Source: Piromyces finnis finn
Taxonomy: Eukaryota; Fungi; Neocallimastigomycota
Assembly: GCA_002104945.1 (NCBI GenBank)
Contig: MCFH01000033.1
Span: 372,001 to 436,000, forward strand
Length of the DNA: 64,000 nucleotides
Direction of reading: 5' to 3'
The position numbers and the translations under genes were made by a program. Below the pieces are notes generated by a model. The model saw nothing but the letters and a program-made list of their open reading frames with translations. It was not told the origin of the DNA and ran no database searches. Numbering within the stretch: position 1 is the stretch's first letter; each line of letters starts with the position of its first letter. Of the stretch, positions 2,456 through 48,003 are shown piece by piece.

Positions 2456-3694
2456 TTATTCCATAAAATCATTGGAAACAGTCGCATCACATTTGCCATA
2501 GTTTTCTTGACAACCATTATCTGGTAAACAATAGTATTCGGTAGTACCACAATATCCTTCCTTTGAACAACATTGTTCATTATTTGGACATCTACCATAA
2601 CCTTCACCACATTTACCAACACTGGATTCACTGTAACATTCACCAAATTCACTTTGACAACCATTACTTAATTTACAGAAATCAGCAGCGATACCACATA
2701 ATCCTTGCTTTGAACAACACCAACCGTTAGGACAGCTACCAATACCTTCACCACATTCTGGTTCAATTGGAATACCAGAAGTTTCTTCTTCATCTTGTTC
2801 GTAATAATCATCAACGATATCATTGACACAGAGACCATAGTCGGATTGACAACCTTGACTAGTGTTACAATAGGCTTCACTTGTTCCACAATAACCATTT
2901 CTGGAACAACAATGGTTTGGATTTGGACATCTACCAAAGTCATAACCACATTCACCATGTTCAGAGACACTATTGCATAAACCAAAGTTTTCTTGACAAC
3001 CTTTAGCAATGTCACAGTATTCACTATCCTTACCACAAAAACCATCACTGTTACAACATTCACCGTTAACACAACTACCAATACCAACACCACATTCTTT
3101 TTCATTAGTACCAGCAATATTAGCTGTATTTACAATTTCATAACAATCTCCAAAGGCAGGTTGACAACCCTTTGAAATTTCACAATAAGCTTCAGAGGTA
3201 CCGCAGTAACCGTACTTTGAACAACATTTACCTACTGGACAATCCTTCATTACATCAGAACCACATTCCCTGGAATCTTCTACTTCTTCTTCATAAACAT
3301 AAACAGTTTCGGTAATCCATTCAGTAACCCATTCAACATCTTCTTCTTCTACCATTTGTTCTTCTCCACAAAGACCATAGGCACTTTGACAACCGGTACC
3401 ACAATAGGCACTTGTTTCACCACAGTAACCTTTTTTGGAACAGCATTGATATGGTTTTGGACATCTACCATAATCCTTACCACATTTACCGTTAGAGGTA
3501 GAGGCGTAACAAGAACCGTATTCTTTTTGACAACCTAAAGTATTTTCACAATGGTCACTTGTAGTACCACAGTATCCATATTGTGAACAACATTGACCTT
3601 CTGGACAAGTTCCGATACCTTTACCACAATTTGGAGCAGCAAGGGTAGTTGTTAATAAGGAAAGTGCAATACTAAGAATAGTTGAAACTTTCAT
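2456..3694 (-). CDS. Secreted chitin-binding protein with seven hevein/CBM18 modules and no catalytic domain
   Basis: N-terminal hydrophobic signal (MKVSTILSIALSLLTTTLAA). Seven CG-x-C-x-CCSxxGyCG-x-C-x-GCQ-x-G-x-C modules with acidic linkers. Intronless 412 aa. Confidence 0.93.
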   Translation of the reverse strand: MKVSTILSIALSLLTTTLAAPNCGKGIGTCPEGQCCSQYGYCGTTSDHCENTLGCQKEYGSCYASTSNGKCGKDYGRCPKPYQCCSKKGYCGETSAYCGTGCQSAYGLCGEEQMVEEEDVEWVTEWITETVYVYEEEVEDSRECGSDVMKDCPVGKCCSKYGYCGTSEAYCEISKGCQPAFGDCYEIVNTANIAGTNEKECGVGIGSCVNGECCNSDGFCGKDSEYCDIAKGCQENFGLCNSVSEHGECGYDFGRCPNPNHCCSRNGYCGTSEAYCNTSQGCQSDYGLCVNDIVDDYYEQDEEETSGIPIEPECGEGIGSCPNGWCCSKQGLCGIAADFCKLSNGCQSEFGECYSESSVGKCGEGYGRCPNNEQCCSKEGYCGTTEYYCLPDNGCQENYGKCDATVSNDFME

Positions 3695-13072: not shown

Positions 13073-15989
13073 ATGCTTACAAAACTATTTAGTACAATTT
13101 TGATATTGGGATCACTACTTTATTGTAGTGCTATATCCATTAATATGAAAGCTTTAGTTTTAACCTCAGAAAAGTATATCCAATATGATGATGTTGTAAA
13201 GTTAACTTTACAATCCTATGGTATTCCATATGATATGTATGCTTTCAATGAAAATAATATACCAAAAAGTAACTTAACTTTAGTCAACTCTGATGGTGAA
13301 CCATTATATAACCTTATTATTGTTAATGGTGGAAGTCTTTCATATGAAAATTCTGAAACTCACGCTTGGGTTAGTTATTTAACTTCTGCTCAATGGGCTT
13401 ACATTGAAGAATATGAAGCTAAATACCATGTACGTAGAGTCTCTATCGATTCCGAAATTAATATCTATAATTATATCGATTTATATGACCAAAATGATTG
13501 GGGTAAATCTGTTCCAGAACAAAAACTTATTCCAGCAGATAATGATGTTACTAAGAAGATTTTTGAAGATACCAGAGTTAAATTTACTGCTCCATTAGAT
13601 GTTAACAAGTAAGTATTTATTATATACTTTTTTTTTAAAAAAAAAAATATTAAAAACTTTGGATGGATAATGGATATTAATTAAATTGGAAAAAGAAGAA
13701 AAAAATTAAAGCACATGGATAATTTTTTGCTTATCCCTCCTAAAAGTTGTTATGAAAAATAAAAAAAAAATGTTGCTTATTTTTAAAAAATTTTTAAAAA
13801 ATTTCTAAAACTCCTCTTTTTTATTTTTTATTATGATTAAATGATTATTAACCATTTATTATTTTACAAAATTCTTCATTTTACTATAATTTAATAGTAT
13901 CTATCACACTAGAATAAAGATTACTGATGAATCTATTGTTAAACCATTCTTATACTATGATGATAATGGTTCAAAGGGTGCTGTTGCTGCTACCATCTCT
14001 ACTTTCCCAGATGGTCGTGAAAAAATGAGTTTCTACTTTGGTTTTGGTTCATGGTCTCAAAGTAGTATTATCCTTAATCACTTATGGTTAGTTTGGGGTA
14101 CTCGTAATATTTTCAATGGTTTCCGTCGTGTTTACTTCTCTGCTCATATTGATGATGTTTTCCTTTCAACAGATCTTATTGATATGAAAAAAGGTTTAGT
14201 TGAAAATGAAGAAGGATTAGCTTTCCGTACTAGTAGTAAGGATTATGACGGTATCGTTAAATTCCAAAATGATATTATGAAAAAAATGCCAGACGGTTCT
14301 TTCTTCAGAGTTGAATTAGCTTTCAATGGTAACGGTATTATTATTCAAGCTGATCCAGAATCTGCTGTTGAAGTAGATGGTGAACGTTATGTCGATTTGG
14401 AATTCGTAAAAACTCCAGGTACTGGTGATAAGCGTTGGCCAAAAGAAAATTATCAATTAAATTTCTCTGATTCTTTCTACCAAAAGGATCCATTATTCAA
14501 ATACTTTGCTAATAATGATGCCCATCAAAAGGAATTCTTCTGGAGTTCTCACACCTTCTCTCACGAAAACTTAGATAACGCCTCTAGAAGTGATGTCGAT
14601 AATGAAATTCGTGTCAACATTGAATTAGCTAAGAAATTAGGTGTTGTCGGTAAGGAATGGTGGTCTGAACATGCTATTATCACTCCACAAATTTCTGGTC
14701 TTCACAACAAGGATGCTCTTGAAATTTTCAGACAATACGGTATTACTGCTGGAACTGGTGATCTTAGTCGTCCAGCTATTACTAACCTCGAAAACCCATA
14801 CCTCCCATTCTACACTACTTTAGAATCTAGTAACTTGGAAGGTTTCCCAATTATCCCACGTACCCCAACTGAAATTTACTACATGTGTACTGATGTTGCA
14901 GAAAATACTTGGATGTACAACCATATCTACAAATCTTACTTTGGTAAGGAATCTACCTGGGAAGAAATTTCTGACCGTGAAAGTAAACGTACTTTACTTT
15001 TAATGACTAAACTTCGTCATGAAGCTCACCAATTCCACCAAGCTAACCTTCGTAATGAAGATACTGGAAAATCTCTTCTTGAAGAATGGGTCACCCCAAT
15101 TGTTAACTTGTACAATCAATACGTTGAATGGCCATTAATTTCTCTCAAGATTGATGATAATATGGAAAGCTTCAAAAAACGTGCTAATATTGAAGCTTGT
15201 GGACAAAAAGTTAAATTAATTATTAATGATAACAAGGTGACTGGTATTTCCGTTTCTGCCACTAAAGGTGATTGTACTCTTCCAGTCACTGTTCCAGTTA
15301 AAATTAATGAAGCTACTCTTCCACAAGGTATTACTCTTGAACAAGTTGGTAAGGATCCATTAACTGTCTGGGTTTCCTTAGTCAAGGGTGAAACTAAAAT
15401 AATCGAATTTGCTGAAGGTATTGAATGGAAGATTAATGAAGATACTCCAGCTTCCGCTGAACCATCTAACCCAACTACCACTACTGTTATCGGTAAAAAT
15501 TGAACAACAAGTTTAAAAATTAATTAAAAAAAAAAACTATTTTTTATTTAAAGACACTATTATTAATCAATCTTCATTTATCACTAATATTCTATATCAC
15601 TATTTATAATCAAATATTATTATTTATAAATGTTATTTTATATATATCACTACTATTTATACCCTCTTTATCACTATGATTCCTATCATTTTATTTTTTT
15701 TCTCTATGATTATCTTTTATCCAATATATAATTAGATGAACAAACAGTTATTGTTGATACTACCACCACTATAATTGATGATGTTACTACTCCAGTCACA
15801 ACAACAACAACAACTACTACTACTACTACTACAACTACTACTCCAGTCACAACAACAACAACAGCTACTACTACTACTACAACTACTACTACTACTACCG
15901 CAACTCCAACTTCATCTACACAAAATTGTGATCAATATAAATTACAAATTCTTAAATACATTAAATGCATATTAAACATTAAAATCTAA
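13073..15989 (+). CDS. Agd3/CE18-like secreted polysaccharide deacetylase, paralog 1; exons 13073-13608, 13898-15492, 15736-15989
   Basis: Signal peptide; motifs RRVYFSAHIDD, FWSSHTFSH, ITPQISGLHN, GDLSRP, PRTPTEIYY and FHQANLR match the Aspergillus Agd3 family from memory. Introns 13609-13897 (GTAAGT..AG) and 15493-15735 (GT..AG) restore colinearity with paralog 2 (DVNNIYHTR vs DVNGIYHNR; TTVIDEQ vs TTVIDEP). A Thr-rich linker is followed by TQNC and a non-CBM tail. Confidence 0.85.
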
Positions 15990-17443: not shown

Positions 17444-17555
17444 GAAAATCAGAACAAGAAAGATCCAGTATTTTTACTTAGCAGGAAGCCCCATTCCAAT
17501 TACTTCCTGATGGCTACACTTATCTTAGTGTTCCATTTGATAAGAATTTGTCCCT

Positions 17556-20500
17556 CCCCTTAGATGATATTCGCTCCTTCTTTATCCGTGGTATTCGATC
17601 ATGGTCAGTAAATATGCTATGGGAAAAACTCGAGGTTATTCTAGAAGATAAATTTAATTCAGTTATTAGTGTTAAATATTTTCAAACTTTCAATGATCAC
17701 TTTTTCTTAGTCAAGGTTCATGGTTCATCGAAAGATTGTATTAAAATCTTACACATGTTAAAGAAGAAACTTTCAGTTACCTCAATTTCCTTTTCAGCTC
17801 GTAGTAGAAGGAATCACAAATACACTTTTTCCACTCTCAAACGTAAAATTTTAGTTTCTAATAAACATCAACATTCTATTCAACAATCATTTCAACAATC
17901 AGTTCAACAATCAGTTCAACAATCTCATCAACAATCCGATCTTCAACAAGATCTTCAACAGGATCTTCAACAAGTTTCCCATCATGAAAATATTCCAGAT
18001 CTACAGCAAACACAATTTCAATCTCAACATTCAACAATTAATTCTAATAGTTCTATCAACTCTGATAACAGTTCAATAGTTGATAGTTCTTCAGTTTCAC
18101 AGCCATCTAGTAATAGTTCTACTTATTCCTCTGATGCATCATCCATTAATAACGATGACTTTAATAATAATAATAATAGCAACGATTCTTCCTCATCCAA
18201 CAAGCCTGATAACTTTTCTTTTTGTCTTAGTTGGAACACCAATGGGTGGAATCATGAAAAGAGAGATAGTATTAGCTATTTCACAGCTATTTTCAAACCA
18301 TTATTCTTATGTTTCCAAGAAACTGGTAATGGTTCTGGATCGAATACAGATTATCCTTGTCGTGTTACTTTGCGAAACTATAGACACTTTTTCAAGAAAG
18401 CTGACGAATCAGTTCCGGGAATGAGAGGTTTATATTTAGGTTTTCACAATTCATGTCAAGCCTCACTTGAAAACTTCTCTGGAAAGTATATTATTTCTAT
18501 TTATACTTTTAGTCTCTGGAATAGATTCAAATGCTCGATTGGTAATGTTTATATGCCTCATAGTCATCACAACATCTATGTTGATCATGCAAAGTTAGAA
18601 GTTCGCTTGTGGTTACAAACTCATTCATCCCATCCATCGATTCTTGTTGGTGATTTTAATATGTCTAAAGTAAAATTATCCAACTGGTTATCAACTAATG
18701 GATTAGGAGATTGGGAAATTCTTCCGCTTAGAGGGTCTACTATCTCTTGGACTCGAGGTGATCAATCTTCCGACATTGACCATGCTCTTATCAATTCGAA
18801 GATGAAAGATCTTATTCACTCAGGATCATTTATAAATAATTTTTATCCTGTATCAGACCATAAGCCACTTCTTATTAATGGTAAAATTATTCCTATGGAA
18901 GATTTTTCTAATGACTTTAATGTTCCTAAGAAAATTCTGAAATGGAATAGATTAAAATGTATTGAGGAAAAGGAATCTATTCTCAGTCATAATAAATTCC
19001 AAATACTTTCAGCAAAATTCAACGATCCTAATGTTTCTACAGATGAACTTTCCAAAGAGTTTACTTCAACTGCTTTTTCAATTGCAGACGAGCTCAGTAT
19101 TACTTCAGCAAATAATGTTATAAAGTCTTCATTTCATATTTCACAACAAATTTTTAATCTCCAAAAAATCAAAATGAAGTTGTATAAGAGATTTAAAAAA
19201 GAAAGAATTTATGATATAGATGAATTTATTAAAAGAATTAAAATCTACCGTAAACTCATTGATTACATCCACAAAAGATGTAATGAATTTAGGAAGCAAG
19301 AATATCTTCATTGGATTAAAACAGGATGTGAGTATATGAAGAGTCATAATCCTAAGAAGGCCTGGAAATGGATCAAGAAAACTGCAAAAATTGGAAAAGA
19401 TTCTTTCTTTATTGCTCAACCAATTAAAAATAAAAATGGAGAATTAGTTGTTGCTACGGAAGAACAACTAGATGTGTGGCATGATCATTTCGAAAATCTT
19501 GCATCAGATCCAAGTGGTGTAAGTCTTGATTTGGAGCATTGGTATGAAGAACCAACGAATAAACGTTTTTCACTTCCTATGCTTGATGAGTGGGATATCA
19601 ACCAAGATATTAGTATTGATGAAGTCAAGTCAGCTATCCTCACTACTCCAAATTATAAAGCATCAGGTCCGGATGGTATTCCAATTGAATTTTACAAAGC
19701 ATTAGTTCCATCAAGTAATGATTCTAATAATGCTACAGATAATAATTCTTCTGGTAATACTACTTCAGATAATGATGCTCATGGTTTAAATTTTATTCTT
19801 AAATTATTCAACCGTATTTGGGATGGAGATTTCCCCAACTCATGGAATGAATCCAGTATTGTTTCTATTCCTAAGAAGGGAGATTTGACAGATTGTGATA
19901 ACTATCGAGGTATATCACTTATCAATAATGGTATTAAGTTGATTTCCAAAATTGTCACCACTAGAATCTCAGAATATGGTTTAAAGAATAATTTCATTAG
20001 ACCTGAACAATTTGGTTTTCGAAAAAAGGAAGAAAGTATCAGTCTTTTCATTTCAATCCAAGAAATATGCCGTAGACGTCAATTAGATAATAAAGAGACA
20101 TATTTGGCCTTTTTAGATCTCAGGAAAGCATACGATTCAGTCCCAATCGGTAATATTCTCCATAAATTAGATTGTTTAGGAATCCGAGGTAAGAGTCTAC
20201 AATTTATCAAAAATTTATATTTAACATCTAAGGCTAATGTCAAATTAGATGGACAATTCTCGAAATCTTTTGATGTGAAGAAAGGAGTCCGTCAAGGATG
20301 CCCTCTTTCTCCTATTCTCTTTAATCTCTTTATTAATGATATATTTAAAGAGTGCGAAGATCTAGGAGTCAGTTTAGGTGACACTCGATGCTGTGGTGGA
20401 CTTTTTGCAGATGATATAGTTATTTGTGCTCCAACAAGAGGATGCTTAAAAAAGATGCTTAGAAGAGTTAATGAATGGGCATTGTATAATGAAATGGAAT

Positions 20501-22278
20501 TTGGTATCCAGAAATGTTCAACGATGGTGATTCGTCCTGAATCAATAGAAAATCAGAACAAGAGAGATCCAACATTTTACTTAGCAGGACAACCCATTCC
20601 AACTACTGATTGTTATACTTATCTTGGTGTTCCATTTGATAAGAATTTGTCCCTTAAACCAGTAATTAAAGCTCTTAATAACAAGGTTTTGAAAGGACTT
20701 TTCTCAGTCAGTAAATTCTTAAGAAATCCTAATATTCCTATTCCTTTCAAAAAACTAGTACTTAACTCACAAGTGATTAGCAGAGTTTCATACTTTGCAC
20801 CATTACTTGGATCCAACAAAGCTAGGTCTAGGATTGCTCAGAAGCATGTTAACAAAGGAATACGATGGGTTGCCGGAGTTCATAAAGCTGTATCGTTTAT
20901 ATCTTTATACTCTATTTCAAAAGATTTGAATATTCCTCCATTGTCAGCCAAATGTGCGTTAGCTCAGGTTAGATGTTTTAACAAATGGAAAAACTCAAAT
21001 TGTATTATCTCACACCTTGTCAATTACATTCCTAAATTTAGAAAATACACGTGGTGCAAATCAAGTAGGACACTTGATAAAAAATTAAAGAAACATGGAG
21101 ATGTTAAAGCAGTTAAAAACTTTTATTGGAAAGATCTCAAAGGGAATTCAATCAAAGCGCAATATTATGATGATAATAAGTTTATTGAAACTAAAGATTT
21201 TATCAAATTATGTTATGAATACCCAGAGTTTGCCTATGGCTTCTACTGGCTATTGAAAGCAAGAAGCGGATATAAGTTGGATGCTAGAGTTGCCAAAGCT
21301 GCCAAATTTGTTGATCCAGTTTGTCCTAACTACTGTCCATGTTGCAAGTGTGGAGATCAAAGTATTAAACATTGGTTATTAGATTGTCCAACATTTAGAG
21401 ATATCCGTATTAAACATTATGATTCTATAGTCCAGCTATTAAATTTTTTCAGTCAACGTAATTCCAATAGTCCTATCAATAATAATGAAATTGATAATAT
21501 CAGTAGAGATAGTAATAACAGTAATAGTAATAGTAACAATAATAATAATAACAATAGTAATAATAACAATAGTAGTAATAGTAATAATAGAAATAGTAAT
21601 AATAACAATAGTAGTAATAGAAATAATAATATTAATAATGATAGCAATAGTGAAGATAATAATTCTAATTTAAATAGTAATTTAGTTAATGATAGTAATA
21701 GTTCTAATAATCCGGTGAATATTAATGTGTATGATTATTCTAGTGTGTGCAGTAAAATATTTAAATTCCTTCTTGGGGGAAGAAGTTTTAACAATATTAA
21801 TTACAATTCAAGGGAATGGAAAGAACTTTGTAAGCGTCAGATTCAATCTGGTACTAACGAAGGAACACCATTCTTGACGGTAACCGCGGAACTTCTAACC
21901 AAAATCATGCCTTTTGCTATTGGCCAGCAATGGACAATGTTCAAAAGGTTTGAAGCAACATCCAAGAGCGTCAATGCTGAAGAAACAGTAAGACAGGCCA
22001 GGAGGGCCAGCGCAACCAATGGAGATCATAATTTTGTTCCATGACAAAATTTTGATCTTTGGCTCGGTGTCCCATTGGAAGTCAAATACAATTATTATAC
22101 TTTAGTATGATAGTGGCTTTCTTACTTTAATTAAAATTACTAGAATACATTATACCCAATTTTTATTCATTTGTGTTTATTTAAACATATTTTTTTATTT
22201 TTATTTTATTTTAATTTTTATATTACATGTATTATAATTTTAATTAAATTAATAATAAAGTTTAAAATATTTGATGCC

Positions 22279-27904: not shown

Positions 27905-30775
27905 ATGGCTCGTTTAAATAATTTATTAAAGGGTTTTGCTATGTCCGTATTCGTGACTATGGCTGCCTGTAAGCAATCAATTAACATGAAAACTTTAGTA
28001 TTATCTACAGCTAATAGTGAAAATGAAGCTATTACTCTTAATTTAAATTCATATGGTATTCCATTTGATATTATTGAATTTTCATCTTTGAATACCTTAA
28101 CTGGAAATTTAACATTATATAATGAAGATAAAGAACCAAAATATAATCTTATTGTTGTTAATGGTGGTTATCTTTCCTATGAAAATAATGGTACCTGGGT
28201 AAGTGCATTAAATGCTGAACAATGGTCTTACTTGGAAGAATATGAAGCTAAAAATAGTGTTCGTAGAGTTGTTATCTCTGAAGATATTTCTTACAACAAA
28301 GAAATTAAATTACAAGATCAAAATAATTGGGGTGAAACTAAAGTTCATCAAGATTTAATTGTTGACACTTCCGATGAAATTAAAAATATTTTCAAGGATG
28401 CTAGAGTAAAGATGACATTACCATTGGATGTTAATGGTATTTACCATAATCGTGTTGAAATCGTCAATACCAACACCACCAAGCCTTTCTTATACTACAA
28501 TGATAATGGTGAAAAGGGTGCTATTGCTGCTACCATTTCTACCTTCCCAGATGGTCGTGAAAAGATGAGTTTCTTCTTTGGTTTCGGTTCCTGGTCTCAA
28601 AGTAGTATTATGATTGGTCATTTATGGTTAACTTGGGGTACTCGTTCTTTATTTAATGGTTTCCGTCGTGTTTACTTTACTCCACATATTGATGATGTTT
28701 TCTTATCTACTGAATTGGTCGATCTTAAGAATAATGAAGTATTCACTGAAGAAAGTGAAATCTTCCGTACAACTACCTTAGATTACCAAAAAATCGCTCA
28801 ATTCCAAAAAGATGTTTTAGAAATCATGCCAGAAGGTTCCTTCTACAGAGTTGAATTAGCTTTCAATGGTAATGGTTTATTACTTAATGTTGACTACGAT
28901 GAAGCTCTCGAAGTTGATGGTGAACGCTATGTTGACTTGGAATTTGTTAAAGAACCAGGTACTGGTGATAAACGTTGGCCAAAAGAAAATTACAAATTCT
29001 CTTCAAAACAACTTAGTACTTTCCAAAAGGATGACCTCTACCAATACTTTGCTAACAATGTTACTGCCCAAAAAGAATTCTTCTGGAGTTCTCACACCTT
29101 CTCTCACGAAAATTTAGATAATGCTTCTAGAACTGATGTTGACAACGAAATTCGCTTAAACATCGAAGTTGCTGATATGTTAGGTCTTCGTGATAAGGAA
29201 TACTGGTCAGGTGGTTCTATTATTACCCCACAAATTTCTGGTCTTCACAACAAGGATGCTCTTGAAATCTTCCAACAATACGGTATTTTCTCTGCTACTG
29301 GTGATCTTAGTCGTCCAGCTATTTGTAATGTTGCTAACCCATACCTTCCTTACTACACTACCTTAGAAAGTAGTAATCTTGAAGGTTTCCCAGTTGTTCC
29401 ACGTACTCCAACCGAAATCTATTACTTCTGTTCCACTAGAGATGAAAATGCTTGGATGTACAACCAAATTTACCACAACTACTTCGAAGGAGATTCTACT
29501 TGGGATGAAATTGCTGAACGTGAAAGTAAACGTACTCTACTTTTAATGACTAAACTTCGTCATGAAGCTCACCAATTCCATCAAGCTAACCTTCGTTATT
29601 ACAAGAAAGAAGGTGAATATGGTGAATCTCTTCTTGAAGATTGGACTAGAAGTGTTGTAAAGTTATACACTCAATACGTTGACTGGCCATTAATTTCAAT
29701 TAAAATGGACGATCAAGCCAAAACTTTCATTGAACGTGAAAAGTTGGAAACTTGTGGTCATCAAACAAAGTTAGAAGTTGAAGATAATAAAATTATTGGT
29801 ATTACTATTACTGCTACTAAAGGTGAATGTACCGTACCAATTACTGTTCCAAGTGGTGTTAATAAATCTACTCTTCCTTCTGATGCTACTCTTGAACAAA
29901 TTGGTAAGGATCCATTAACAGTCTGGATTCCATTAAAAAAGGGTGAATCAAAATCTATTCAATTAGAACCAGCTCTTGAATGGAATGTTGTTGAAGAAAC
30001 TATTCCAGTTGAACCAACCACTACTATTATCGAATCAACTAATCCAGCTGAACCAGTAACCACTGCTGTTGAACAAACAACTGTTATTGATGAACCAGTT
30101 ACTACTGTTGTTGAAGAAACTACAACTACTGTTACTATTGTTGTTGAACCAACTACTTCTGTTGAACCAACTACAACCACTACTACTACTACAACTGTTA
30201 AGCCAACTACTACTACCACCACTACTACTACCACTACTACTACTACAACTGTTAAACCAACTACTACTACAACTGTTAAACCAACTACTACACCATCTGA
30301 AAAATGTAGTAGTGCATGGGGTAAGTGTGGAGGTATTGGTTACACTGGTCCATCATGTTGTGTTGAAGGTTACTACTGTAAGTATTCTAATGACTACTAC
30401 TCTCAATGTGTTCCAGGAACTGCTGCTGAAACTACCACTACTAAAAAGACTACTACTACCACCACAAAGAAAACTACTACTACCACTACTAAAAAGACTA
30501 CTACTACCACCACAAAGAAAACTACTACTACCACTACTAAAAAGACTACTACTACCACCACAAAGAAAACTACTACTACCACTACTAAGAAAACTACTAC
30601 TACTACCACTAAGAAGACTACCACTACTACTGCTAAACCAACAGAAACACAATGTAGTGGAGCCTGGGCTGCATGTGGTGGTGAAGGTTACAAAGGTCCT
30701 TCTTGCTGTGTCTCTGGATACACTTGTGTAAAATTCAATACATGGTATTCTCAATGTATTCCAAAATTAATTTAA
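27905..30775 (+). CDS. Agd3/CE18-like secreted polysaccharide deacetylase, paralog 2, with two C-terminal CBM1 (fungal cellulose-binding) modules; intronless, 956 aa
   Basis: ATG at 27905 precedes a signal peptide. Same HIDD, HTFSH and FHQAN motifs as paralog 1. CBM1 modules CSSAWGKCGGIGYTGPSCC..YYSQC and CSGAWAACGGEGYKGPSCC..WYSQC are separated by a Thr/Lys linker. Confidence 0.9.
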   Translation: MARLNNLLKGFAMSVFVTMAACKQSINMKTLVLSTANSENEAITLNLNSYGIPFDIIEFSSLNTLTGNLTLYNEDKEPKYNLIVVNGGYLSYENNGTWVSALNAEQWSYLEEYEAKNSVRRVVISEDISYNKEIKLQDQNNWGETKVHQDLIVDTSDEIKNIFKDARVKMTLPLDVNGIYHNRVEIVNTNTTKPFLYYNDNGEKGAIAATISTFPDGREKMSFFFGFGSWSQSSIMIGHLWLTWGTRSLFNGFRRVYFTPHIDDVFLSTELVDLKNNEVFTEESEIFRTTTLDYQKIAQFQKDVLEIMPEGSFYRVELAFNGNGLLLNVDYDEALEVDGERYVDLEFVKEPGTGDKRWPKENYKFSSKQLSTFQKDDLYQYFANNVTAQKEFFWSSHTFSHENLDNASRTDVDNEIRLNIEVADMLGLRDKEYWSGGSIITPQISGLHNKDALEIFQQYGIFSATGDLSRPAICNVANPYLPYYTTLESSNLEGFPVVPRTPTEIYYFCSTRDENAWMYNQIYHNYFEGDSTWDEIAERESKRTLLLMTKLRHEAHQFHQANLRYYKKEGEYGESLLEDWTRSVVKLYTQYVDWPLISIKMDDQAKTFIEREKLETCGHQTKLEVEDNKIIGITITATKGECTVPITVPSGVNKSTLPSDATLEQIGKDPLTVWIPLKKGESKSIQLEPALEWNVVEETIPVEPTTTIIESTNPAEPVTTAVEQTTVIDEPVTTVVEETTTTVTIVVEPTTSVEPTTTTTTTTTVKPTTTTTTTTTTTTTTTVKPTTTTTVKPTTTPSEKCSSAWGKCGGIGYTGPSCCVEGYYCKYSNDYYSQCVPGTAAETTTTKKTTTTTTKKTTTTTTKKTTTTTTKKTTTTTTKKTTTTTTKKTTTTTTKKTTTTTTKKTTTTTAKPTETQCSGAWAACGGEGYKGPSCCVSGYTCVKFNTWYSQCIPKLI
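30430..30630 (+). repeat. Coding minisatellite encoding the (TTTTTTKK)n linker between the two CBM1 modules
   Basis: 24-bp units, alternating ...actactaaaaag and ...accacaaagaaa variants; 7 KK pairs. Confidence 0.9.
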
Positions 30776-33657: not shown

Positions 33658-34923
33658 ATGGAATCGGAAAATAATAATAATAAAAAGCACGAACATCAAC
33701 ATAAAGAAAATACAAATGAACATTATTATTGTACATGTCATTTATGTGATTCAGAGTATGATTCAGAGTATGATAGTGAATATGATAGCGAATATACTTA
33801 TTCTGATGATAGTTACTCAGAATGGGAAGATGAAAGTGTGGTTGATGAAGATTTATGGAGTGATCCTGAATATATTAATGAAGCAATACTTAATATGAGA
33901 CCTCATTCTGGTTGGGATTCAACAACGATACCAAGAAATAGATATCATCTTCCAGAGTCAGTTTTACAAAATAACAGAAATGTAAATTTTTACGTCAATG
34001 AAATTAATAATCAATCAAGGGATAGAAGTGACAATTTATTAGAGCAACCTTCTACTCGACAATTACTTGATATACCAAATCATTCAAGGGAATCCACTTC
34101 TTCAAGCTCAACTTTAAATAACTCAACGAGCGAGGAAAACAATAATAATGGTGAAACTCATAATCTCAATGAAAACAATAGAAATAGTAACATAAGAAAC
34201 CGTCATCACAACAATAACAACAATCAAAATAGACATAATAGTAGTAATAATGATAATGACGATGATGATGGCAATAACAATAATAGACCAAATATTAGAA
34301 GAAATAACACAAATCGTAGTAATAGACCAAGAAAATCAAAAAGAAAGGCATTCTTTTCTCATTTAATGTTTGTAGTAGCTTTAGTAAGTACATTAGCATT
34401 AGTATTATTTGTCCAACTCTTTGGTTATATTTTAACTGCTGCTGATCAAGCAAGAGACGTTACTTTAAGATTATCTAATTATAATAGACGCCAAACTGTA
34501 ATGGATAATAACGAAAGAGTAAATGAAAATGAAAATGATGAAAATACTCGATCCACTGAAAATCCATCATCATCAATTCCAAATGTAGACCCGGATATTG
34601 TATTCACTGAAGAAGTTTTAGATATAAATACAACAAATGATGATAATGAGGAAGGAAATAAGACAGAGGAAGAAGAGGAAGAAGAAGAAAAGGATAAGGA
34701 GAAAAAGAAAAAGAAAAAAGAAGAAAAAGAGAAAAATGAATTTTTAGCACATTTATCCTCATTAAGAGCAGCTCAAGCTATGGCTGGAACTAATCAAAAT
34801 CCTAATCGCGTCAATGACGCAACCCGCATTAACGATCCAACACGTATGTCAAATCCATCTAATCGTATAGCATCCTACCTTTCTAACTACGTCTATTATA
34901 ATTCAGATATCTACTCTCCATAG
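33658..34923 (+). CDS. Hypothetical low-complexity protein with one predicted transmembrane helix
   Basis: 421-aa intronless ORF with ATG after an A-rich leader. Hydrophobic run AFFSHLMFVVALVSTLALVLFVQLFGYIL follows a basic stretch; acidic and Asn-rich segments. No family recognised. Confidence 0.7.
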   Translation: MESENNNNKKHEHQHKENTNEHYYCTCHLCDSEYDSEYDSEYDSEYTYSDDSYSEWEDESVVDEDLWSDPEYINEAILNMRPHSGWDSTTIPRNRYHLPESVLQNNRNVNFYVNEINNQSRDRSDNLLEQPSTRQLLDIPNHSRESTSSSSTLNNSTSEENNNNGETHNLNENNRNSNIRNRHHNNNNNQNRHNSSNNDNDDDDGNNNNRPNIRRNNTNRSNRPRKSKRKAFFSHLMFVVALVSTLALVLFVQLFGYILTAADQARDVTLRLSNYNRRQTVMDNNERVNENENDENTRSTENPSSSIPNVDPDIVFTEEVLDINTTNDDNEEGNKTEEEEEEEEKDKEKKKKKKEEKEKNEFLAHLSSLRAAQAMAGTNQNPNRVNDATRINDPTRMSNPSNRIASYLSNYVYYNSDIYSP

Positions 34924-42765: not shown

Positions 42766-44754
42766 AGTTTAGTAGGTTGATTTCTTGACTGAGATTTTGT
42801 ATATCGTTTCGAGATTTCTTGAATTACTAAGTTAATTTGAGTATAATGAAATATTAATTAACATTCAAAGGCTTTTAACACCTTATGAATGGTCAACTAA
42901 TAAGCTATCAGAGTCAGATTTCTTATTTAGTTTGTCTAGAACAATAGTCGATGTATTAGATCTTCGTAATTTTTTATTAGTTTCTTCTTCTATTTGTTCA
43001 TTGGGATGAGTTCGTTTAGGCGATTTAGGTGTTTCATCAACACCTGATTCTACCTGATCATCTATTAAAACTAAATAGTGTTCACCACTCTTCCCATTTT
43101 TATAGTTTTCTATAAAATTTTTATGGTTTTGGTAAAGGTATCCTATAATACCTTTATCATCCGCATTAACCATAAAGCGTTCATATATAATATCAAAACA
43201 TAAGATTAATAGGCTGACTTTTTTATTTCTATCTTTACAATCTTCTATTTTAGTAATAATAGTATTAATATTAATAGTATTTAATTTTTCATCACAATCT
43301 ATTTTGTTGTTTTTTAACTCTTTTAATAATTTCTCTTCGAGTTTTTGCTGCTCAGAATTTTGCCCGAGCTCACCCTTTTCTTTCATTATTTCTTCAAGGA
43401 ATACGAACAATTTTCCTCCATTTTTCTTTTCAAATTCTAACAATTCATTAATTATATCTATCTTTTGTTTCTTTTCGTAAAAACCCTTATATGGCATTTC
43501 TCCTTCCTTTTCATTATTTTTTCTTTGACGGCCTCTTCCAGTTTCTAATGAAACTTTGACTTTAAATACTTCCGTTTTCTTATCTTCCTTCATAAATAAT
43601 ATATTAATTTTATTATAACAAGTTTTTTTGTTTTTCCCTTTAAATGGAAAAGAGATGTCAAATTTCTTTTTATCAATAAAATTAGCTTCAATGAAATTTA
43701 AATCATCTTTGCAACTTTCATCTCTAATATTATAAAATGATCCTTTTTCTGATTTATCTGAAAAGATTTCATGCTTTTCGTTTAGTATGATCCTTATAAA
43801 TTTAACATTTGAAAATATTCCATTCTGATTTTCTATACAAAGTTTAAATTCTCTTTTTTCTTTATACTCATGATCACCTTTATAAACGATTTTCGCCTCT
43901 TTTTCGTCAGGTAACTTGCTACCAGGTAAAGATATAATTTTTAGTACAGAATTATATTTTTCCTTTACAGAATTCTTACTCTTCCTTTTAACATTTTCTT
44001 TCTTATTGTTATTATTTTCTTCATAATTATTTTGAGCACCTTTATCATTAGAGAAATTCGAATTTTTAAAAGACTTGCAATCATTTGAATCATTTTCAGC
44101 AATAGGATTATTCATGTTTCCATTATTTTTAATAATACATGGAATACTTTTCGTACTAATTAATCTTGTTGGAACAATATTTGGTTGATAATTATTATTA
44201 TTACTAATATCAGGATAATGAGTATTAGACTCATTGTCTTCTGAATTATTACTACGATAATCATTACCACCATGATTGATTCCTTTATTAATTAAATAAT
44301 TATATTGATTAATATTCCATTGAGTAGTATTATCGAGAATAGGAGCATTAAAAATAAATCTATTACTATCGGAAGGTGATTCAAGATTGAAACTATTTAA
44401 TTCGGATTGCAATTGATTAGGATAACGAGAAGGATAATTTTGAATACTTTTTTGTTTCATCACTGGCATATTTTGAACGAAACTAGGAACCAATAGAATT
44501 TGTTGAACTGGATTTTGTTGAACTGGAATTTGTTGAACTGGAATTTGAAAGACATGCTCAACAGGAGTACGATGTTCCAAGTTTTGATTAATACAAGGAA
44601 GGGATAAATAAGTCATAGTTTGATTATTGCGCTTTCCCTGAATTGAATTAGAAAGTGAGGAATAATTAAAACCATTCTTTCTTTGATAATTATTATACTC
44701 ATTTAACAGTGTTGCCATTTGAATACTCATTCTTAAAAATCAGCCTACTAAACT
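42766..44754. repeat. 18-bp inverted repeat pair (17/18) bracketing the 615-aa ORF
   Basis: AGTTTAGTAGGTTGATTT at 42766-42783 and AAATCAGCCTACTAAACT at 44737-44754. Imperfect similarity extends to about 33 bp. No TSD seen. Confidence 0.65.
42883..44730 (-). CDS. Hypothetical 615-aa protein; possible DNA-binding/transcription factor-like
   Basis: Long intronless ORF. Q/P/N-rich N-terminus, central beta-strand-patterned region ending FKVKVSLETGRGRQRK, helical C-terminal region, basic NLS-like KKLRR. No family firmly recognised. Confidence 0.7.
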   Translation of the reverse strand: MSIQMATLLNEYNNYQRKNGFNYSSLSNSIQGKRNNQTMTYLSLPCINQNLEHRTPVEHVFQIPVQQIPVQQNPVQQILLVPSFVQNMPVMKQKSIQNYPSRYPNQLQSELNSFNLESPSDSNRFIFNAPILDNTTQWNINQYNYLINKGINHGGNDYRSNNSEDNESNTHYPDISNNNNYQPNIVPTRLISTKSIPCIIKNNGNMNNPIAENDSNDCKSFKNSNFSNDKGAQNNYEENNNNKKENVKRKSKNSVKEKYNSVLKIISLPGSKLPDEKEAKIVYKGDHEYKEKREFKLCIENQNGIFSNVKFIRIILNEKHEIFSDKSEKGSFYNIRDESCKDDLNFIEANFIDKKKFDISFPFKGKNKKTCYNKINILFMKEDKKTEVFKVKVSLETGRGRQRKNNEKEGEMPYKGFYEKKQKIDIINELLEFEKKNGGKLFVFLEEIMKEKGELGQNSEQQKLEEKLLKELKNNKIDCDEKLNTININTIITKIEDCKDRNKKVSLLILCFDIIYERFMVNADDKGIIGYLYQNHKNFIENYKNGKSGEHYLVLIDDQVESGVDETPKSPKRTHPNEQIEEETNKKLRRSNTSTIVLDKLNKKSDSDSLLVDHS

Positions 44755-46629: not shown

Positions 46630-48003
46630 TTAACAATTATTTTTAATGCTGCACCAATTTCCGTCAAGAACACCCCAGCGACTACCATCTTCTTCAGTTA
46701 AAAATACATCACAAGTTGGACAACATGGATAATCAGGATAGAATGCACATGAGTCTTTAGCTGATTTTAATGCTTCACATTTTGATGGAATACCACACCA
46801 TTCACCATTTTCAGAACCCCATTCTTGACCATCATTAAGAACAACGTAACAACTATTCTTACAACATGGATAATCTGGTTCTGACCAACATTTTTCATCC
46901 TTTAAAGATGGATTATTTTGATTTAAAGAACTTGAAAGTACCTTGTAGATTTCACCGATAGCTTCATCTCTAAAGACTAATGTTTTGCGGTTAAAATGTT
47001 CACCATTATCCCATAAGAATGGACACATACCAGAATTAAGTGAAGTTTCAGCAACAGTTTTTAAGAATTTATGAACACTATTAATATCCTTATTTTTGGT
47101 AACAGTACCATATTCACCAATAACTACTGGAATACCATTATCGACAAAACGTGTTTTTATTTTTTTGAAATCGTTAAGAAGATATTCAACTTCACTTTCT
47201 GATCCCCAAGTTGGTTGGGCTTTACCCCAATCAGCATCTTCTTCAAGAATAGTGAAGGTAGAAGGGGTATAATAATGAACAGAAACCATAACACGATCAT
47301 CTTTTGGAACAACATAAGCTTCATCAATAGTTAGATCAATATCAGTACAATAACCAGCTAAAAGTAAATGTCTTTCCGTATTATTACCACCTGAATTACG
47401 AACAATATCAACAAAATTTTGATTCATTTCATTTAAAAGACCATATGCTTTTGATTTGTCTCCTTGATTAGACCAACGATTCCAAACAGTATTCCAACAA
47501 CCTTCTTCATTTAATGATTCGAAAATTAAATTCTCATTAACATCTTTGAAATAATCTGATATTTGTTCCCAAATTCTTCTATATTTAGTGAAGGATTCTT
47601 CTTCTTTTGTAGCAAAATTTTCAAACCAACCATTATCCCAGTGAATGTTCATAATAGCATACATATCATTATTAATAATGTAATTAACAATTTCTTTTGC
47701 TCTAGCAAGTAATAATGGATTTATAGTATAATCAGAAGCAATAAGGTTACTCCAAGCTACTGGAACACGGATTGATTTAAATCCATAGCTTTTAATACCT
47801 TTTATCATTTCTTCAGTAGTTTCTGGATTACCCCATGAAGTTTCATATTGTTTAACAGTACTACCATTAATCCAGTCACCACATGCTTCTAAAGTGTTAC
47901 CTAAATTCCAACCAACACCCATATCTTTAATAAGTTCTTGTACGGTCATAGCATAAGTTGTGCTAATACCACCTAATATAGTTAAAATATTTACTAACTT
48001 CAT
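46630..48003 (-). CDS. GH5 endoglucanase (GH5_4-like) with two C-terminal fungal dockerin (CBM10-type) modules
   Basis: Signal peptide; GWNLGNTLE, SWGNP, IRVPVAW, NIHWD, acid/base FESLNEE, VHYY, nucleophile IGEYG, LWDNG. Two C..YPCC...WG.E/L.G.WC dockerin repeats. Intronless. Confidence 0.95.
   Translation of the reverse strand: MKLVNILTILGGISTTYAMTVQELIKDMGVGWNLGNTLEACGDWINGSTVKQYETSWGNPETTEEMIKGIKSYGFKSIRVPVAWSNLIASDYTINPLLLARAKEIVNYIINNDMYAIMNIHWDNGWFENFATKEEESFTKYRRIWEQISDYFKDVNENLIFESLNEEGCWNTVWNRWSNQGDKSKAYGLLNEMNQNFVDIVRNSGGNNTERHLLLAGYCTDIDLTIDEAYVVPKDDRVMVSVHYYTPSTFTILEEDADWGKAQPTWGSESEVEYLLNDFKKIKTRFVDNGIPVVIGEYGTVTKNKDINSVHKFLKTVAETSLNSGMCPFLWDNGEHFNRKTLVFRDEAIGEIYKVLSSSLNQNNPSLKDEKCWSEPDYPCCKNSCYVVLNDGQEWGSENGEWCGIPSKCEALKSAKDSCAFYPDYPCCPTCDVFLTEEDGSRWGVLDGNWCSIKNNC

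Follow-up and report, generated by a model that had tools for sequence, protein, structure and literature searches.

A CE18 (Agd3-family) deacetylase with two CBM1 modules in the gut fungus Piromyces finnis, and candidate partner genes of a GAG-type pathway

Background

The founding member of family CE18 is Agd3 of Aspergillus fumigatus (PDB 6NWZ; PMC7229062), a secreted protein composed of a CBM87 module, a CE18 domain and a C-terminal beta domain, and encoded by a single gene within a co-regulated GAG cluster of five genes. The enzyme is specific for GalNAc and does not attack chitin or chitosan oligomers, and the CE18 motifs CM1 to CM4 were defined in the same study, CM2 lying more than 120 residues past CM1 (beta2 insertion) (PMC7229062). 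The bacterial Pel deacetylases belong to other CE families (CE21 for PelA of P. aeruginosa, CE26/CBM114 for PelA-DA of B. cereus; PMC13254593) and remove, in a metal-dependent reaction, N-acetyl groups from an alpha-1,4-GalNAc exopolysaccharide, which becomes cationic and adhesive, the polymer itself being made by a PelF-type GT4. These enzymes are periplasmic or membrane-associated and devoid of cellulose-binding modules. A third point of comparison is given by CBM1-tagged fungal enzymes, such as the CE15 glucuronoyl esterase 6RV8 and the GH10 xylanase 6Q8M, in which an enzyme other than a cellulase is brought to cellulose by a CBM1 attached at its C- or N-terminus through a Ser/Thr-rich linker.

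Several elements of these systems had previously been reported in gut fungi. Agd3 homologues were mentioned in Chytridiomycota “including anaerobic herbivore symbiotes” (Bamford et al. 2020; PMC7229062, section 13), GH114 was counted with the most abundant CAZyme families of these fungi, with speculation on GAG (Gruninger et al. 2018; PMC6054980), and a 2025 review gives 16 CE18 and 19 CBM87 for Piromyces finnis (Table 2 of PMC12586995). NCBI/UniRef also contain CE18-CBM1 proteins from P. finnis, Piromyces sp. E2 and Neocallimastix lanati, for example as “carbohydrate-binding module family 1 protein”; the fusion is thus already catalogued, but without a known activity. In view of these reports of 2018, 2020 and 2025 and of the database entries, an earlier note on this DNA, in which neither the architecture nor a GAG pathway was taken as known in gut fungi, overstated their novelty. 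In the literature, we found no paper discussing CE18-CBM1 fusions and no report of a GalN/GalNAc polymer in gut fungi. The present study adds a gene inventory (CE18, GH114, GalE and PelF/Gtb3-like genes), the variety of modules attached to CE18 and an informative gene adjacency in the chytrid Phlyctochytrium arcticum.

Results and discussion

Gene organization

The gene was analyzed within a 64-kb stretch of the P. finnis genome, hereafter the window, whose first letter is position 1. Positions 27905-30775 of the forward strand form a single intronless ORF of 956 aa, uninterrupted between its ATG at 27905 and its stop codon at 30773-30775, with a coding GC of 28-38% against 12-16% in the flanks. 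From N- to C-terminus, the product is made of a signal peptide, CBM87, CE18 (Agd3), the Agd3 C-terminal beta domain, a Thr-rich linker, a CBM1, a (TTTTTTKK)n linker and another CBM1, in agreement with the earlier note, which had called an Agd3/CE18 enzyme with two CBM1 modules and had placed it exactly. The features considered here are the following:

13235..15503, +, second CE18 paralog, CBM87-CE18-Agd3_C without extra CBM, one intron within CBM87 (Pfam)
27905..27970, +, predicted signal peptide, aa 1-22, MARLNNLLKGFAMSVFVTMAAC (basic n-region then hydrophobic core, read from the sequence)
27980..28636, +, CBM87 module, aa 26-244 (Pfam PF25116)
28682..29764, +, CE18 (Agd3-type) metal-dependent deacetylase domain, aa 260-620 (Pfam PF25115)
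29765..29974, +, Agd3 C-terminal beta-sandwich domain, aa ~621-690 (6NWZ alignment, AF2 strands)
29975..30298, +, linker 1, aa 691-798, rich in Thr, Val, Glu and Pro (translation)
30299..30412, +, CBM1 module 1, aa 799-836, six Cys (Pfam CBM_1, PDB matches)
30413..30649, +, linker 2, aa 837-915, about nine TTTTTTKK repeats (tandem repeat, translation)
30650..30775, +, CBM1 module 2, aa 916-952, with a short tail and the stop codon (Pfam CBM_1, PDB match)

The signal peptide region appears as a low-confidence N-terminal helix (aa 2-18) in the AlphaFold (AF2) model, and homology to Agd3 begins only at aa 26-27. Linker 1 contains imperfect tandem repeats (30036-30295), and linker 2 a 24-nt tandem repeat of 8.6 copies (30431-30637, 84-94% matches), giving a segment rich in both Thr and Lys and hence cationic; these Thr-rich stalks are presumably O-glycosylated. 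The protein has no dockerin (CBM_10) match with Pfam at E up to 1 and is therefore not expected to be bound to the cellulosome.

A search for contigs encoding exactly this product returned no record, the window's own genome possibly lying outside its scope. By word content, four sequencing runs from one organism (library type guessed) contain 73-91% of the sampled words, and rumen and faecal metatranscriptomes 5-9%, which suggests, but does not prove, that the gene itself or close relatives are expressed.

The deacetylase core

Profile searches identified CBM87_Agd3 (PF25116) over aa 26-244 (E 4.5e-51, 174 bits, profile positions 1-214 of 214) and Agd3_CE (PF25115) over aa 260-620 (E 6.7e-83, 279.1 bits for a cut-off of 27.6, profile positions 3-364 of 366), so that the refuting outcome named in the earlier note, a domain outside the CE18/Agd3 profiles, did not occur. 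Among PDB sequences, Agd3 (6NWZ) aligns with aa 27-678 at E 3.9e-88.

All six CE18 catalytic residues are intact. The DD, HxxxH and FHQAN motifs read in the earlier note are present as D263/D264 in HIDDVFL (CM1; Agd3 D377/D378, the base and a metal ligand), H397/H401 in SHTFSHE (CM2; Agd3 H510/H514) and the catalytic H559 (CM4; Agd3 H668), to which R500 in VVPRTP is added as the CM3 arginine (Agd3 R613). The spacing of CM1 and CM2 is also preserved, with 133 residues from D264 to H397 against 132 in Agd3. No substitution of D263, D264, H401 or R500 occurs among 35 homologues, and conservation reaches at least 90% at H397 and H559. In the CBM87 cleft, the 6NWZ alignment together with the mutagenesis data of PMC7229062 equates D127, Y180 and W230 with Agd3 D242, W292 and W344, the replacement of W292 by Tyr being conservative.

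The AF2 model (pLDDT 90.7, pTM 0.89) presents the three-domain fold, with CBM87, a (beta/alpha)7 barrel and a C-terminal beta domain whose strands at 619-692 have a pLDDT above 90. Its best Foldseek match is 6NWZ (TM 0.84/0.88 at 30% identity, E 1e-61, rmsd 3.2 A), whereas its TM to the bacterial PelA is only 0.28. The Pfam Agd3_C profile does not score on this copy, although the orthologue P0001 and the paralogs score. Judged by its residues and predicted fold, the gene product is a member of the Agd3 family, predicted to be secreted and catalytically competent. It differs from Agd3 by its two CBM1s, absent from the latter, on long Thr-rich stalks.

The CBM1 modules

Two stretches match CBM_1 in Pfam (E 1.9e-20), and a search of the P. 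finnis genome recovers them at window positions 30314-30400 (G000:C160:402314-402400) and 30662-30748, among about 100 CBM1 modules. Module 1 aligns without gaps to 4BMF (E 1.4e-10) and 1CBH (E 1.2e-9), and module 2 to 1CBH (E 3.6e-8). Both are likewise gap-free against the CBMs of T. reesei Cel7A and EG1 and keep the four conserved cysteines as well as the flat-face aromatics, W805/Y831/Y832 in module 1 and W921/W947/Y948 in module 2. The two canonical CBM1s on a Thr-rich linker described in the earlier note are thus borne out by the alignments and the translation, and the pair probably binds cellulose.

Using as reference the metagenomic orthologue P0001, which is 87% identical (MAFFT alignment) and has the same CBM1x2 layout, dN/dS is 0.10 for the deacetylase domain, ~0.53 for linker 1 and 0.22 for the two CBM1s jointly. 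The CBM1s are therefore under purifying selection, as is the catalytic core. Their sequences are close to those of the tagged enzymes of the 6RV8 and 6Q8M type (E 1e-9 to 1e-10), which act on plant hemicellulose or lignin-carbohydrate bonds, whereas the core of the P. finnis protein belongs to a biofilm-polysaccharide family.

The CE18 family in gut fungi

While Agd3 is a single, clustered gene, the P. finnis protein is one of ~16 dispersed CE18 paralogs, which carry CBM1, dockerin or no added module; relatives in other gut-fungal data bear CBM18 as well (P0020/P0027/P0028). Within P. finnis, P0004 (BCR36DRAFT_587375) has three CBM1s, P0014 (BCR36DRAFT_587301) has two CBM10 dockerins, and dockerin-bearing paralogs are located on contigs C197 and C46. 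The second CE18 gene of the window, at 13235..15503, has its exon junction at a GTAAGT donor near 13606 and is identical to P. finnis P0039 over the columns kept for the tree (CE and C domains). The gut-fungal proteins constitute a single gut-fungus-specific radiation of the same core, with 42-87% identity to the CBM1x2 protein. Their common plan is a low-complexity stalk that ends in a C-terminal targeting module; the latter varies, being directed to cellulose (CBM1), the cellulosome (dockerin) or chitin (CBM18), or is absent. The CBM1x2 gene and its close relatives are intronless, whereas the more basal paralogs retain the intron in CBM87.

In the CE18 tree, the gut-fungal sequences cluster together beside chytrid homologues, and the distribution of CBM1 requires at least four gains or losses, a figure possibly raised by truncated gene models. 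As to an acquisition from rumen bacteria by horizontal transfer, no sign of it is seen in this tree of gut-fungal and chytrid sequences.

Partner genes

Among the partner genes of a GAG-type pathway named in the earlier note (Gtb3, Uge3, Sph3 and Ega3), the P. finnis genome has Gtb3-like and Ega3-like genes and a GalE, and Sph3 was not found. GH114 (Ega3-like) gave 25 matches over the cut-off at ~24 loci, eight of them confirmed by Pfam; a membrane anchor is present at the C-terminus of some copies, and one copy bears three dockerins. A single GalE epimerase (G000:C188:193621-194771, 348 bits to TIGR01179) may supply UDP-GalNAc and shares 46% identity with the epimerase adjoining a chytrid Agd3 homologue. 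Three genes combine DUF3492 with GT4 (Glycos_transf_1) and have PelF as top NCBIfam match, which recalls the bacterial Pel systems. All three are PelF/Gtb3-like synthases, and two of them reach 2,920 and 2,974 aa, with 10-12 membrane helices predicted. Outside the GT regions, the giant synthase gave no match in relaxed Pfam scans or in an Atlas look-up. A P. finnis PelF-like GT is 38% identical (E 1.6e-106) to a Metarhizium GT with two neighboring Sph3 (Spherulin4) genes. For Sph3/GH135 itself, neither PF12138 nor a Metarhizium Sph3 exon gave a match in P. finnis, both searches lacking a working positive control.

Synthase, GH114 and CE18 loci are spread over many P. finnis contigs without physical clustering, and the second CE18 is the only additional GAG-related gene of the 64-kb window. 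In P. arcticum, the Agd3 homologue stands between an NAD-epimerase gene and a DUF3492+GT4 gene of 2,656 aa, collinear with the giant GT of P. finnis. This clustering of the deacetylase with synthase and epimerase points to a biosynthetic role; the Agd3 homologue of Gonapodya is not clustered with a synthase.

Proposed role and alternative explanations

We propose, at about even probability, that the enzyme is a fibre-tethered de-N-acetylase maturing a GalNAc-rich exopolysaccharide of the fungus itself. By homology with Agd3, the CBM87 and the CE18 barrel would form one long groove holding an alpha-1,4-linked GalNAc-rich chain; a metal ion would be bound by D264, H397 and H401, the base would be D263, positioned by R500, and the acid H559, and N-acetyl removal would convert GalNAc into cationic GalN. 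The two CBM1s would park the enzyme on crystalline cellulose, i.e. on plant fibre. Its likeliest substrate would be an own GAG/Pel-like exopolysaccharide, for whose synthesis the GalE epimerase would provide UDP-GalNAc to the giant PelF/Gtb3-type membrane synthases and whose chains the many GH114 hydrolases would trim, and deacetylation at the fibre surface may generate an adhesive polymer where rhizoids contact plant material. The cationic adhesive at the rhizoid-plant interface suggested in the earlier note is still a hypothesis, now better grounded. The reaction of the P. finnis CE18 may be likened to that of the Pel deacetylases.

The tags carried by these proteins, CBM1 and dockerin, are however the usual marks of plant-wall enzymes, and the CE18-CBM1x3 paralog adjoins a CE8 pectinesterase-CBM1 gene, so that a plant or a foreign substrate is possible. 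CE18 and GH114 could attack Pel/GAG-like alpha-1,4-GalNAc exopolysaccharides that are foreign to the fungus, produced by rumen bacteria or by other fungi living on plant fibre, CE18 creating GalN stretches cut by GH114, either to clear the biofilm of competitors or to scavenge amino sugars. Pel operons occur widely in both Gram-positive and Gram-negative bacteria. Large secreted repertoires of both families, with dockerins in each and the CBM1s described here, would place such enzymes on a contested fibre surface, and Ega3 (GH114) is specific for deacetylated GAG, the agd3 and ega3 homologues being functionally linked (PMC7229062, section 13). As the main role this is unlikely, considering that the fungus has synthases of its own, that the deacetylase of a chytrid relative is clustered with synthase and epimerase and that some GH114 copies are membrane-anchored; the maturation of an own polymer and the attack on a foreign one are nonetheless compatible with each other.

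It is less probable still that CE18 was recruited as a plant-cell-wall esterase removing O- or N-acetyl groups from acetyl-xylan, acetyl-mannan and the like, with the CBM1s targeting lignocellulose. The related CE4 family includes acetyl-xylan esterases, CBM1 modules abound in this genome, the CE18-CBM1x3 paralog has the CE8 neighbor mentioned above, and both tags are typical of gut-fungal lignocellulolytic enzymes (PMC6054980). Against it, the CBM87 GAG-binding cleft and the entire Agd3 architecture are conserved, the sole CE18 activity that we found reported in the literature is alpha-1,4-GalNAc de-N-acetylation, CE18 co-occurs with an expanded GH114 and PelF-like synthases, which are families without plant substrate, and it also occurs in non-herbivorous chytrids, one of them having it clustered with a synthase. 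Finally, remodelling of the fungus's own wall, with CBM1s binding chitin, as some CBM1s do, instead of cellulose and an amino-sugar polymer deacetylated in situ, recalls the sister proteins of the same subclade in other gut-fungal data that have a chitin-binding CBM18 in place of CBM1, but is very improbable given the inactivity of Agd3 on chitin or chitosan oligomers and the agreement of the CBM1 flat faces with cellulose-binding prototypes.

Conclusions

With ~16 deacetylases, a matching synthase and hydrolases in the same genome, a sticky amino-sugar matrix is likely made by gut fungi. Extending the own-polymer reading, we suggest more tentatively, and at somewhat less than even probability, that gut fungi and the wider chytrid-lineage fungi make a Pel/GAG-like cationic GalN/GalNAc exopolysaccharide by means of giant PelF/Gtb3-type synthases, that in gut fungi the deacetylases have diversified, being addressed to cellulose (CBM1, as in the gene described here), to the cellulosome (dockerins), to the fungus's own chitin wall (CBM18) or left free, and that the polymer would serve as a glue fixing rhizoids and enzyme complexes to fibre.

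Gut fungi contribute to the digestion of ruminants and are used to convert biomass, and both rest on the attachment of their rhizoids to plant fibre; to our knowledge, their adhesive matrix has not yet been defined. The complete-looking cationic GalNAc/GalN toolkit (synthase, epimerase, ~16 deacetylases and ~24 hydrolases), some members of which are addressed to cellulose, cellulosome or chitin, represents a concrete candidate for it. If this holds true, it would constitute an unrecognised component of rumen fibre colonisation, account for the long-puzzling abundance of GH114 in gut fungi and bring early-diverging fungi into the range of GAG/Pel-type biofilm chemistry, alongside Ascomycota and bacteria. 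The enzyme would also be a ready cellulose-anchored polysaccharide deacetylase, with a possible use in producing chitosan-like cationic coatings on cellulose.

A CE18/CBM87 protein carrying two cellulose-binding modules

The gene at 27905-30775 (+) is one unbroken open reading frame of 956 codons, with its ATG in an A-rich context and a TAA stop, and its GC content is 28-38% in the coding part versus 12-16% in the flanks. The content of public sequencing runs is suggestive of expression of this gene or of close relatives. It had been described in the earlier note as an Agd3/CE18-like deacetylase fused to two CBM1 modules, Agd3 being the CE18 enzyme of Aspergillus fumigatus (PDB 6NWZ), and Pfam, PDB-sequence and fold matches all agree with this description.

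Domain and structure matches of the 956-aa product
aa 26-244: CBM87_Agd3 (Pfam, E 4.5e-51)
aa 260-620: Agd3_CE (Pfam, E 6.7e-83)
two stretches: CBM_1 (Pfam)
aa 27-678: Agd3, 6NWZ (PDB sequence search, E 3.9e-88)

The AlphaFold2 model of aa 1-700 (mee1e0b99135c), built on a 35-sequence alignment, has a pLDDT of 90.7 and a pTM of 0.89, and its top Foldseek match is 6NWZ (TM 0.84/0.88, rmsd 3.2 A, 30% identity). After Agd3, the model most resembles human heparan-sulfate NDST1, matching its N-deacetylase halves (TM about 0.5, E 1e-15) over both the CBM87-like and the CE parts; PelA gives a TM of 0.28. A signal peptide was predicted by eye, no dockerin was detected in the protein by Pfam scan, and the second linker is encoded by a 24-nt tandem repeat translated into about nine TTTTTTKK units.

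The CE18 family is defined by four motifs, CM1 (D377/D378), CM2 (H510/H514), CM3 (R613) and CM4 (H668) (Bamford et al. 2020, PMC7229062), whose equivalents in the alignment to 6NWZ are D263/D264, H397/H401, R500 and H559, respectively. Across 35 homologues D263, D264, H401 and R500 are invariant, H397 and H559 being at least 90% conserved, and CM1 and CM2 are separated by 133 residues as compared with 132 in Agd3. In the CBM87 cleft, D127, Y180 and W230 are the counterparts of Agd3 D242, W292 and W344, any of which weakens galactosaminogalactan (GAG) binding when mutated; chitin and chitosan oligomers are not acted on by Agd3 (PMC7229062). Both CBM1 modules align without gaps to those of Cel7A and EG1, each retaining its cysteines and the three flat-face aromatics. 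In all testable respects of sequence and fold, the predicted protein is a bona fide member of CE18/CBM87.

Conservation of the fusion among relatives

An orthologue with 87% identity (P0001), found on 5-8 kb contigs in JGI metagenomic samples, has the same CBM87-CE18-C-CBM1-CBM1 layout. Pairwise dN/dS between the two genes was calculated by the Nei-Gojobori method.

Pairwise dN/dS by module
CBM87: 0.16
CE18: 0.10
C-terminal domain: 0.22
two CBM1s: 0.22
linkers: about 0.5

These values indicate that all the folded modules, both CBM1s included, are maintained by selection. CE18-CBM1 proteins were also found in Piromyces sp. E2 and Neocallimastix lanati, and a second such gene of P. finnis bears three CBM1s. 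Judged from these sequences, the CBM1 fusion of CE18 is a real, selected variant.

We found no discussion of the fusion in the literature, but such proteins are already in public databases, and the occurrence of the family in gut fungi is already published. Five Chytridiomycota, "including anaerobic herbivore symbiotes" and Gonapodya, were reported to have Agd3 homologues (Bamford et al. 2020, PMC7229062), and CE18 and CBM87 counts are tabulated in a 2025 review (PMC12586995). In four gut fungi, Gruninger et al. 2018 (PMC6054980) listed GH114 among the most abundant families and speculated that alpha-1,4 galactosaminogalactan might work as in aerobic fungi; their study predates the CE18 family, and CE18-CBM proteins would be among the 40-44% of transcripts classed there as "CBM without known CAZy domain". 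Our literature search found nothing on the activity or substrate of gut-fungal CE18s, on their CBM1 or dockerin fusions, on a synthase or on a chytrid cluster.

Module exchange in the CE18 family of P. finnis

A six-frame search of the assembly (56,455,805 bases in 232 contigs) located about 16-17 CE18 loci, in agreement with the 16 tabulated in the 2025 review (PMC12586995), and four of these genes are identical to NCBI P. finnis proteins over the columns kept for the tree, which identifies the organism as P. finnis. Contigs of this assembly are designated G000:C or C, and stretches extracted from them or from other genomes L.

Accessory modules of the CE18 copies (Pfam scan)
27905-30775 (+): two CBM1
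copy on C199, beside a CE8 pectinesterase-CBM1: three CBM1
copy on C197: two dockerins
copy on C46: one dockerin
remaining copies, among them 13235-15503 and four divergent copies arrayed in tandem on C113: no extra Pfam module

The CE8 pectinesterase, with its C-terminal CBM1, lies at L016:6091-7398 (-) on G000:C199, convergent with the CE18 paralog. Other gut-fungal data contain CE18 relatives with chitin-binding CBM18.

In a quick IQ-TREE maximum likelihood tree of the CE and C-terminal domains of 93 sequences, computed without bacterial or ascomycete members, all gut-fungal CE18s form one radiation adjoining the chytrid homologues, and the gene studied here groups with the CBM1x2 orthologues (support 98-99). 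At least four gains or losses of the CBM1 label, and 10 of all accessory labels together, were counted on this tree, both numbers being open to inflation by truncated gene models. Targeting modules were evidently exchanged again and again on an unchanging CE18 catalytic core.

The following features were also observed in the window.

2456-3694 (-): protein of 411 aa that consists of seven hevein-type, chitin-binding CBM18 repeats (E 7.4e-49) and lacks a catalytic domain
13235-15503 (+): CE18 paralog in the same orientation as the two-CBM1 gene and 14 kb upstream of it, without extra CBM, with one intron inside CBM87 at a profile position common to several other paralogs
17548-22044: reverse transcriptase ORF of a LINE between the two CE18 genes
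33658-34923 (+): intronless ORF of 421 aa without Pfam match
42883-44730 (-): intronless ORF of 615 aa without Pfam match
46630-48003: GH5 with two fungal dockerins (CBM10), which, together with the base composition given above, is the mark of an anaerobic gut fungus

No intron interrupts the two-CBM1 gene or its closest relatives.

Candidate genes for a galactosaminogalactan-like pathway

Among the GAG genes proposed for verification, Ega3 (GH114) and Gtb3 (GT4 synthase) both have counterparts in P. finnis. About 24 loci encode Ega3-like GH114s; in a sample of eight, one has three dockerins (L030:2330-3604), several bear stalks rich in Thr and Lys, and two finish with an apparent membrane anchor. 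About ten GH114 genes form an array on G000:C178 (783-815 kb), two of which, L031:1411-3429 (-) and L036:1419-2771 (-), encode proteins with a hydrophobic segment and then a basic tail at the C-terminus, which makes them look like type-I membrane-anchored Ega3-like hydrolases.

Three Gtb3-like GT4 genes pair DUF3492 with Glycos_transf_1. Their best NCBIfam match is PelF, with scores of 97-102 bits that straddle the cut-off of 100, and PelF clusters are also their neighbours in the ESM Atlas. Two of these genes, G000:C200:1152675-1161434 (L007:675-9434) and G000:C200:1202303-1211224 (L008:303-9224), are giant intronless ORFs that encode proteins of 2,920 and 2,974 aa. The two products share 39% identity, and in each a C-terminal PelF-type GT4 is preceded by 10-12 predicted membrane helices, which lie at about aa 900-1490. 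No Pfam match was obtained for their first approximately 900 aa or for aa 1500-2350, nor any Atlas neighbour for the first 887 aa of the one named C200a. This predicted layout fits the description of Gtb3 as a "putative transmembrane glycosyl transferase" (PMC9030451). Over the GT region, the P. finnis sequence shares 38% identity (E 1.6e-106) with a protein of Metarhizium majus whose gene adjoins two Sph3 (Spherulin4) genes; a GAG cluster described in Metarhizium includes a Gtb gene (PMC8224951), and this neighbourhood suggests that the M. majus protein is the Gtb of such a cluster.

For the epimerase Uge3, one GalE of predicted function was found, 46% identical to the epimerase of a cluster in the chytrid Phlyctochytrium arcticum. 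No match to Sph3 (GH135) was obtained in P. finnis with the Pfam family or a Metarhizium exon, the positive controls of both searches being silent as well. The GAG-type genes of P. finnis are unclustered.

The P. arcticum locus (L039:7472-22621; GCA_025602905.1, JAHLKI010000016.1) holds an Agd3 homologue between an NAD-dependent epimerase gene and an adjacent gene for a 2,656-aa DUF3492+GT4 membrane synthase, the latter being collinear with the P. finnis giant glycosyltransferase over both the membrane and the GT parts. Its predicted gene content makes it a chytrid gene cluster of GAG/Pel-like type, of which no description was found in the literature.

Possible function and significance

By homology, the enzyme would be a secreted, metal-dependent de-N-acetylase whose extended CBM87/CE18 groove would take an alpha-1,4-GalNAc-rich chain, and its two CBM1s should keep it on crystalline cellulose. 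The synthases, the epimerase and the anchored GH114s of the genome, together with the chytrid cluster, lead us to give an even chance to its maturing, on the surface of the fibre, a GAG/Pel-like polymer made by the fungus itself. Breakdown of a foreign Pel-like biofilm on the fibre by CE18 and GH114 is rather unlikely as the explanation, even if compatible with maturation of an own polymer. Recruitment to an acetylated plant polysaccharide appears improbable: the CBM1 and dockerin tags and the CE8 neighbour suggest it, but nothing beyond them does. Action on the fungus's own wall through chitin-binding CBM1s, to which the CBM18-bearing sister proteins from other gut-fungal data could point, is very improbable.

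Beyond the single fusion, the more interesting part is the putative toolkit of synthase, epimerase, deacetylase and hydrolase, together with the swapping of modules on the deacetylase and the chytrid cluster, which make the hypothesis of an adhesive matrix in these fungi open to direct test.
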